NCBI GenBank assembly: GCA_025201805.1
Contig: MU619378.1
Coordinates: 19,635 to 83,634, forward strand
Length of the DNA: 64,000 nt
Origin: Parasitella parasitica NRRL 2501
Lineage: Eukaryota; Fungi; Mucoromycota
Reading direction: 5' to 3'
Under the pieces are notes generated by a model. The model ran no database searches, was not told the DNA's origin, and saw nothing but the letters and a program-made list of their open reading frames with translations. Numbering within the stretch: the stretch's first letter is position 1; the number at the start of each line of letters is the position of its first letter. Both the position numbers and the translations under genes were made by a program. This document shows positions 13,854 to 20,606 of this stretch, piece by piece.

Positions 13854-15112
13854 TTATTTGGCTTCTTCATTTTTTGGTTCTGAAACAGGAACTTTCTCAG
13901 TGTTTTCAGCAGAAGCGTCGGTCTTGGCGGCCAAAGCAGCAGCTCTCTCAGCCTTCTTCTTCTCCTTCTTTTCCAATTTGGGGTTGAACTTCTTAACTGG
14001 TACAGGCTTAGGGTAAGCCAATTCAGTGAGCTTGACGAATTCGGGATCCTCAAATGCTTTACGAACGGGCTCTAATAGCTCGTTGATAGCAGCAATGACA
14101 CCAGCCTTCAGATCTCCAGGATGAACAACTTTATCAGCAAAATCCTTTTCCAGAGCCTCATAATTATCGTAAACCATGTTACCACCATATTGCTCAGGAC
14201 GGATGCAAGTAAAAGCAGCCTTGTTACCATTCAAGGTTTTGAGAGGGAAATATACAGACTTGACAAAGGATAAGATGCCATTTTCCTCGATATTACCTTC
14301 CTCACAAAAAGCCTTTTTGATCTTTTTCTCAACATCCTTGCGACTGTCTAAAAAGTCAATTTTGGAATCAGGGTCAGAGGCAGACATCTTGGAACCGGTC
14401 AAGCCAGGAACCATAGGGTTCATCAAGTGAGAGCGTTTCTTATAGCCCAATTGAGGCATGTACTTTTCAGCTAAAATGAAAATCTTGCGCTGATCGACAC
14501 CACCAAACTGGGCATCGACCTTCAAGTATTCTTCGTCAAGAGCCTGCATACCGGGATACAGCAAACCTGATAAAAGAGGAGAAGCAACCTGCTTGACAAC
14601 CTCAGCACCAGCACGCTTAGCATCGTGTTCAGTGACAAGAGCACATAAGCGGAAGTTGTCCATGGTGTATTCCTTTGATAACTCGTAGGATGAGCCAATG
14701 ACAAACTTGAGTTTCTCGATAGGAACACCGAGAGAGGTCAAGACAGTTTTGATCATCTGTTCATAGTATTTGACACGATGATTGACAAGCTCAAGTGGTG
14801 CTTTCATGTTGTCAAGAAAAGCGTGAAGGTCGGCCAAAAGAATAGTCATCTACAATATATAAAAAAAAAGCGTCAATTGTTGAGCGTTGATGTGGATGGT
14901 GATCCAAACTTTACCTCTACACCAGCAGACAGGAAATCGGCAATCTTGGTCATAGGTACAAAGTAACCAATGTGTGGTCTACCCGTAGGAGCGGTTCCCC
15001 AGTACATCTTGAGATCACGCTCAGCAAGAACCTTCTTCATTTCATCAGCACCAAGAACCTCTTGAAGATTACGAGTGATAAGATCGTACTTTTCGTCAGG
15101 AGTAAGAGACAT
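13854..15112 (-). CDS. TYS1: Cytosolic tyrosyl-tRNA synthetase (intron 14850-14914)
   Basis: [14 protein letters not shown] (HIGH), [31 protein letters not shown]. Confidence 0.97.
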
Positions 15113-19707: not shown

Positions 19708-19774
19708 AAATCTATGTATATGTCTATCTTTTTTTTCATTTTTTTTTTTTTTTTTCATTCAAATTTATTGTATC

Positions 19775-19937
19775 AAAACCCTCTTGCGAAGGTTTCCAAA
19801 AATTGACTAGAGGATCAATAAGAAAATCCTCTAGACATGAATAAATTACATTGTAATTGTATTGGGTTCGGCATTTATCCATCGGTAGGGACCTCATTTG
19901 GATAAGCATCTCCCCTTTGAAAAGGACAAGGAGCACT
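19775..19937 (-). ncRNA. Spliceosomal snRNA, most likely U4atac (minor spliceosome); ends approximate
   Basis: Minus strand, in order: UUGUCCUUUUCAAAGGGGAG (complementary to U6atac stem II); kink-turn UUAUCCA-AAU-GA-GGU-CCCU-ACC-GA-UGGAUAA; UGCCGAACC; CAAUAC; hairpin CUAGAGGAU/AUCCUCUAG; Sm site AAUUUUUGG; terminal hairpin AAACCUUCGCAAGAGGGUUU. Confidence 0.85.
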
Positions 19938-20115
19938 TTATGAAAAAAATTTGCGTTTTTAATGGTTATTGAACCGAGACTGCTTTCAAACCAACAGATC
20001 CTACTATAATGGCTGCATCCGCAACTCAAATGGTTACCGAAAGGACACCTCTCCTTCAATTCAAAGATATAGATCACGCAGGTGAATAGATTGCGGTGCC
20101 GCACATATCTAGTCG

Positions 20116-20275
20116 NNNNNNNNNNNNNNNNNNNNNNNNNNNNNNNNNNNNNNNNNNNNNNNNNNNNNNNNNNNNNNNNNNNNNNNNNNNNNNNNNNNNN
20201 NNNNNNNNNNNNNNNNNNNNNNNNNNNNNNNNNNNNNNNNNNNNNNNNNNNNNNNNNNNNNNNNNNNNNNNNNNN
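20116..20275. other. Assembly gap (N run)
   Basis: 160 Ns. Confidence 1.
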
Positions 20276-20606
20276 AAAAAAAAAAAAAAAGTAGGTTTAA
20301 CGCATATGGCTGCTGGTTTGCTGGGCGTTCCATAACATTCAAGAAAGTTGTATTATTAAGAGGATATTTCTTACAGTTTGTCATATGAATGAGAATAGAC
20401 TATATTGATAAAACAAACAGCGAAACTTTACTTGACAGTAGACCTATAGATATAAAACTCCAATGGTTATATATGTGATTTTTCCTAGAATGTTATTTCG
20501 ATATTCTTAAGGATATGTCCTGTTCTCGACTTCGTTGTACAAACGCATCATCGTACCATGGTAGATAATGGCGGCTTTGAAAGCAAATGATCAATTTCCT
20601 TATACT

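Follow-up and report, generated by a model that had tools for sequence, protein, structure and literature searches.

A candidate U4atac snRNA gene scoring below the Rfam cut-off in the mucoralean fungus Parasitella parasitica

A candidate U4atac snRNA gene lies on the minus strand of DNA from Parasitella parasitica (Mucorales), from position 19776 to about 19934 of the window, which is the whole 64,000-nucleotide stretch analyzed. We estimate at roughly 95% the probability that the locus is the single-copy U4atac gene of this fungus and the ortholog of human RNU4ATAC. The assignment draws on the match to the RNA family, complementarity to the genome's own U6atac with a preference over U6, a structure conserved with covariation, and the presence of U6atac, U11, and U12 in the same genome, all of which bear out the fungal U4atac proposed in a first-pass annotation made from the sequence alone. 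The gene is presumably functional and unannotated. The elements listed in that annotation (stem II strand, kink-turn [K-turn], CAAUAC motif, 3′ hairpin, Sm site, and terminal hairpin) were verified in coordinates, strand, and order, and the features of the locus are as follows.

19976 to 19987, minus strand: upstream 12-mer, candidate snRNA promoter element, identical in three sequences
19776 to 19934, minus strand: U4atac snRNA gene, about 155 to 160 nt, assigned from the RF00618 match, its single occurrence in the genome, and conservation
19911 to 19927, minus strand: stem II strand, 16 bp with U6atac (one G·U), with one bulged A placed at 19916
19875 to 19905, minus strand: 5′ stem-loop with K-turn (7-bp stem, AAU bulge, tandem G·A, 3-bp stem), predicted Snu13/Prp31 site
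19867 to 19873, minus strand: stem I strand UGCCGAA, pairing with UUUGGCA of U6atac
19835 to 19866, minus strand: central single-stranded A/U-rich domain containing CAAUAC (19859 to 19864), weakly conserved and variable in length
19807 to 19834, minus strand: 3′ stem-loop ahead of the Sm site, a 9-bp hairpin supported by covariation
19796 to 19804, minus strand: Sm site AAUUUUUGG, invariant in seven sequences and matching the Rfam U4atac consensus exactly
19776 to 19795, minus strand: terminal hairpin, U4-like, beyond the Sm site and outside the Rfam U4atac model

The arrangement is that of a U4atac RNA, in which a 5′ stem-loop with a K-turn separates the stem II and stem I strands and a 3′ stem-loop is followed by the Sm site. 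The K-turn has the form originally described and is conserved, with covariation, in orthologs; the 9-bp hairpin, Sm site, and terminal hairpin are likewise all present as claimed.

In a local search, the best Rfam match of the locus was U4atac (RF00618), covering 19792 to 19930 and the entire model (1 to 132) with an E value of 7.9e-7. U4atac was thus preferred to U4 at this locus, although its score of 47.9 bits falls short of the RF00618 gathering cut-off of 53 bits, a curation threshold on a model rather than a biological criterion. At the gathering threshold, Rfam returned no match in the window and none in seven related loci. In a genome-wide RF00618 search, the locus was the sole U4atac match in the 32.8-Mb assembly (E value, 5.6e-6), and the minus strand folds better than its shuffles (z-score, −2.86). 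The 5′ end is uncertain within about 19930 to 19934, conservation beginning at approximately 19931 (alignment A1), and the 3′ end may lie either just past the Sm site (∼19792) or past the terminal hairpin (19776). The RNA gene lies 68 nt beyond the stop codon (19707) of a convergent plus-strand gene of unknown function, which itself follows an Sds3-like gene; a neighboring gene, for tyrosyl-tRNA synthetase, has an exon at 13854 to 14849 with 100% identity to a P. parasitica protein. A run of 160 Ns (a gap or a withheld stretch) occupies 20117 to 20276, ∼185 nt upstream of the U4atac gene.

Duplex formation was computed between the 5′ 80 nt of the candidate and the genome's own RNAs, and the resulting ΔΔG values were compared with those of 300 dinucleotide shuffles. 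The candidate reached −26.0 kcal/mol with U6atac, a value that none of the 300 shuffles equaled, versus −13.1 kcal/mol with U6 (10/300 shuffles as good), in agreement with the better fit to U6atac noted in the first-pass annotation. The major U4 paired with U6 at −18.4 kcal/mol (1/300 shuffles as good) and with U6atac at −6.7 kcal/mol, which is chance level (139/300). The 16-bp stem II duplex amounts to −28.4 kcal/mol with the cognate U6atac versus −17.1 kcal/mol with the genome's U6, and stem I forms 7 of 7 pairs with U6atac versus 5 of 7 with U6. Relative to the Rfam consensus pair UGCUAAC/GUUAGCA, two stem I pairs are altered on both RNAs at once, and this concerted change is the strongest single sign that the U4atac and U6atac genes are partners. 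Stem I, which was absent from the first-pass annotation, is the best discriminator.

These comparisons bear on the reading that the locus is a second, diverged major U4 acting together with U6. Such a copy would account for the U4-like terminal hairpin, which has a 10-nt core in common with the genome's own U4, for a CCAAU in the candidate that could pair with AUUGG of U6, for a candidate-U6 pairing slightly above shuffles, and for the orthologs in Thamnidium elegans and Mucor hiemalis, whose best Rfam match is U4 (41.6 and 33.1 bits, respectively). It is opposed by the two stem I mismatches with U6, where U6atac gives none, by a stem II that is 11 kcal/mol weaker with U6, and by an Sm site and a 5′ end that match the U4atac consensus; the complementarity of stems I and II to a cognate U6 that defines a major U4 was not found in the candidate. 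The candidate is not the genome's U4, because a proper major U4 (100.2 bits; G000:C1:364170-364305) and major U6 (85 bits) lie elsewhere in the genome. We therefore consider a second U4 very improbable and a U4atac gene the appropriate assignment.

One proposed interaction of the central domain was rejected. CAAUAC had been suggested to pair with a GUGUUG at the 5′ end of U6atac; the genome's own U6atac starts with GUGCAU, giving 3 of 6 pairs, and the motif varies among orthologs. A candidate alternative is an A/U-rich pairing of 19837 to 19844 with U6atac nucleotides 1 to 8 (7/8 pairs).

The search for other minor snRNAs that the first-pass annotation had put forward recovered all three. U6atac (64.5 bits; G000:C22:165495-165632, minus strand) and U11 (68.7 bits; G000:C17:195428-195577, minus strand) each occur once and score over their cut-offs, and U12 occurs once at 49.1 bits, under its cut-off of 53, with an E value of 1.6e-7 (G000:C1:510054-510178, minus strand). 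A second U6atac-like match (27.5 bits) was treated as a chance hit; it lies inside an open frame, presumably an Aha1 exon, and lacks a U-run end. The U6atac gene has several peculiarities: its 5′ end reads GUGCAU, the triad position has GGC where the consensus has AGC, and 12 nt are inserted close to the 3′ end. It is located ∼2.5 kb from a PRP43 gene, an adjacency that was not syntenic in three related species, and a U6atac pattern scan of metagenomes gave no matches. The first stem-loop of U11 contains an insertion of ∼19 nt relative to the Rfam model, and the 3′ part of U12 is shortened, as described in other basal fungi (PMC4133162).

Among minor-specific proteins, two were matched by Pfam domains scoring over cut-off: PDCD7/59K and, through its ubiquitin-like domain, 25K. 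A Pfam search for CENATAC gave no match and is uninformative; loss of CENATAC in many fungi is reported in a 2024 survey (PMC11347168). A scan for U12-type introns was also suggested by the first-pass annotation: the strict AT-AC pattern had three matches versus one for the reversed control, and the strict GT-AG pattern had none. Two of the three AT-AC matches fall between open frames, as judged by checking the exons one by one, with splicing predicted only, and both are probable AT-AC introns on sequence grounds. In one (L021:1501-1598; G000:C78, plus strand), the downstream exon encodes an RNB domain of a DIS3-family nuclease; this candidate carries two branch-like CCTTAAC copies. The other (L020:1501-1573; G000:C69:69042-69114, plus strand) is 73 nt long with short flanking exons, on which Pfam was silent and which we take to encode a TBC domain of a TBC1D20-type Rab-GAP. 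The genome thus combines the other minor snRNAs with U12-type introns, the latter in the form of these two AT-AC candidates in coding context.

Conservation was assessed in the syntenic DNA of eight further assemblies plus an additional Rhizopus contig, reached via the neighboring synthetase gene. In line with the expectation of conservation in relatives, an ortholog was found at the same place in six: a second P. parasitica assembly, Mucor lusitanicus (L013:5002-5160), M. hiemalis, T. elegans, Blakeslea trispora, and Benjaminiella poitrasii. The corresponding location contains no copy in Rhizopus delemar and none in Mycotypha africana. Identity to the orthologs is 70 to 93% in the RNA versus 50 to 57% upstream. 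The two assemblies labeled P. parasitica differ considerably (86% identity in the synthetase exon and 57% in upstream DNA) and may represent distinct species. The orthologs other than those of T. elegans and M. hiemalis best match U4atac (41.4 to 50.0 bits); in total, all seven copies score under the Rfam U4atac cut-off, and two of the seven are labeled U4.

The strands that pair with U6atac in stems I and II are invariant in the seven sequences save for position 19916 (A, U, or C), which can be read as a stem II bulge. All 10 pairs of the 5′ stem-loop are kept wherever a sequence has letters, with two changed on both sides, and both GA dinucleotides of the K-turn are invariant in the seven sequences. 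In the 3′ stem-loop, 7 of 11 pairs are changed on both sides and 98.7% of cells remain paired. Across the intramolecular helices, 11 of 29 pairs are changed on both sides, a count reached in none of 500 shuffles and compared with 2 to 4 in slid controls; because the control ignores relatedness and the set comprises seven sequences, this is support rather than a probability. RNAalifold, unaided, recovered the same two stem-loops. The minus strand is the RNA strand, because the one-sided changes are G·U pairs there.

This strandedness weighs against the reading that the conserved block is a 3′ untranslated element of the convergent plus-strand gene or part of a 122-codon open reading frame (19736 to 20104), which the short distance from the stop codon and the overlap with the frame would suggest. 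On the plus strand the one-sided changes would be A·C mismatches, orthologous indels are of non-triplet length, and the 23 bp that can form with U6atac would have no explanation, so that we give this reading almost no credence. A different concern is that the locus is a silent U4atac relic and that the minor spliceosome uses the major U4, as in the hybrid idea (PMC11347168); the sub-threshold Rfam score and the missing CENATAC match point that way. In a pseudogene one would not expect the stems, K-turn, and Sm site to stay invariant, compensatory changes to be found across five genera, or an upstream element to be conserved; in addition, the pairing of major U4 with U6atac is at chance level. 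A relic is accordingly most unlikely, and an active U4atac gene remains the preferred reading.

The first-pass annotation had noted that the terminal hairpin resembles major U4 more than human U4atac, and this proved correct: a hairpin of this kind occurs in U4 of the genome, and the Rfam U4atac model stops 3 nt past the Sm site. A U4-type hairpin beyond the Sm site, seen here at 19776 to 19795, is found in six of the seven sequences (7 to 8 bp; −8.2 to −9.1 kcal/mol), where its sequence differs, and is absent from the Benjaminiella copy. It probably causes the U4 label of two orthologs. The 10-nt core that the P. parasitica hairpin has in common with that of major U4 surrounds a GCAA loop, and the outer stems are different; shared ancestry, conversion, and convergence are candidate origins.

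Upstream of the gene, the 12-mer is shared without change by three sequences that are 52 to 57% alike in the rest of their upstream DNA, a result seen in none of 60 shuffles per comparison, and six of the seven sequences have its core, C(A/G)GTC, between −53 and −63. Its position suggests an snRNA proximal promoter element. The U11, U12, and U6 genes of the genome have in common a CCACAA(G/C)T motif ∼66 to 68 nt upstream of their starts, another candidate Mucorales snRNA promoter element; the Lichtheimia genome paper found no such motif for Pol III genes (PMC4133162).

Compared with RF00618 and human RNU4ATAC, the elements come in the same order, from the stem II strand through the K-turn 5′ stem-loop, the stem I strand, the central domain, and the 3′ stem-loop to the Sm site AAUUUUUGG, and the pairing with U6atac and the full-length model match also agree. 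The P. parasitica RNA differs from the model in its score under the cut-off, in a stem I sequence altered in step with U6atac, and in an extra hairpin past the Sm site, where the model stops; moreover, the 5′ end of P. parasitica U6atac lacks complementarity to the CAACAC-like central motif of the consensus. The major U4 of the genome (RF00015) likewise has a K-turn 5′ stem-loop, a hairpin-Sm-hairpin 3′ domain, and a GCAA-capped terminal hairpin, but it pairs with U6 rather than U6atac and has other stem I and II strands and another Sm site. Model R1 gave this U4 30.8 bits, versus 158 to 192 bits for the seven sequences on which R1 was trained. The U4atac of Rhizopus oryzae (PMC2396436) belongs to the same order of fungi and is also a computational prediction, with stems I and II, the K-turn, and the Sm site all included. 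It is very probably the ortholog of the P. parasitica gene, although it comes from another species and R. delemar has no copy at the syntenic place.

Pairing and structure were computed; transcription, capping, protein binding, and function are projected by homology with the human system (PMC11874965 and established knowledge). By this analogy, U4atac would be transcribed by RNA polymerase II, an Sm ring would be loaded onto 19796 to 19804, and the K-turn would bind Snu13 and then Prp31. Stems I and II would hold U6atac inactive by masking its catalytic triad and internal stem-loop, and a U4atac/U6atac·U5 tri-snRNP would carry U6atac to the genome's few U12-type introns, where the duplex would be unwound by Brr2 and U4atac stripped off.

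The U4atac family is already known in Mucorales, given the 2008 R. oryzae prediction and later reports, and the gene in P. parasitica was itself to be expected. The predictions of Davila Lopez et al. from 2008 include minor snRNAs of R. oryzae, Phycomyces, and Mucor circinelloides; their paper names an R. oryzae U4atac with a K-turn (Fig. 4) and uses a U4atac threshold of 40.03 with an older model (PMC2396436). [quoted passage not shown] No paper in the literature searched names Parasitella together with U4atac. The 2024 survey applied a threshold of 53.2 bits; in several species of mucoromycetes and zoopagomycetes, it recorded U11, U12, and U6atac without a high-confidence U4atac, and it put forward a hybrid spliceosome in which U4 may stand in for U4atac (PMC11347168).

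All seven Mucorales copies fall under that 53.2-bit threshold, and sub-cut-off scores may explain why recent surveys call U4atac missing in these fungi. With all copies sub-threshold, two of them labeled U4, and no pairing between the real U4 and U6atac, the simplest reading for Mucorales is a dedicated, diverged U4atac. Tentatively, and at somewhat less than even odds, the Mucorales RNA could be a structural variant that kept or regained a U4-type hairpin in the mature RNA and lost the animal-type central pairing with the 5′ end of U6atac; standard models would for that reason overlook it or class it as U4, and the lack of U4atac reported for early-diverging fungi would in large part be a detection artifact, together with the hybrid-spliceosome idea that builds on it. 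The value of the finding is practical, in that it exposes a detection gap and a U4-like terminal hairpin. The P. parasitica gene and its orthologs argue against the 2024 idea that U4 replaces U4atac in mucoromycetes. M. lusitanicus is a genetically tractable mold, and its ortholog makes the U4-substitution idea testable in a species that has very few minor introns.
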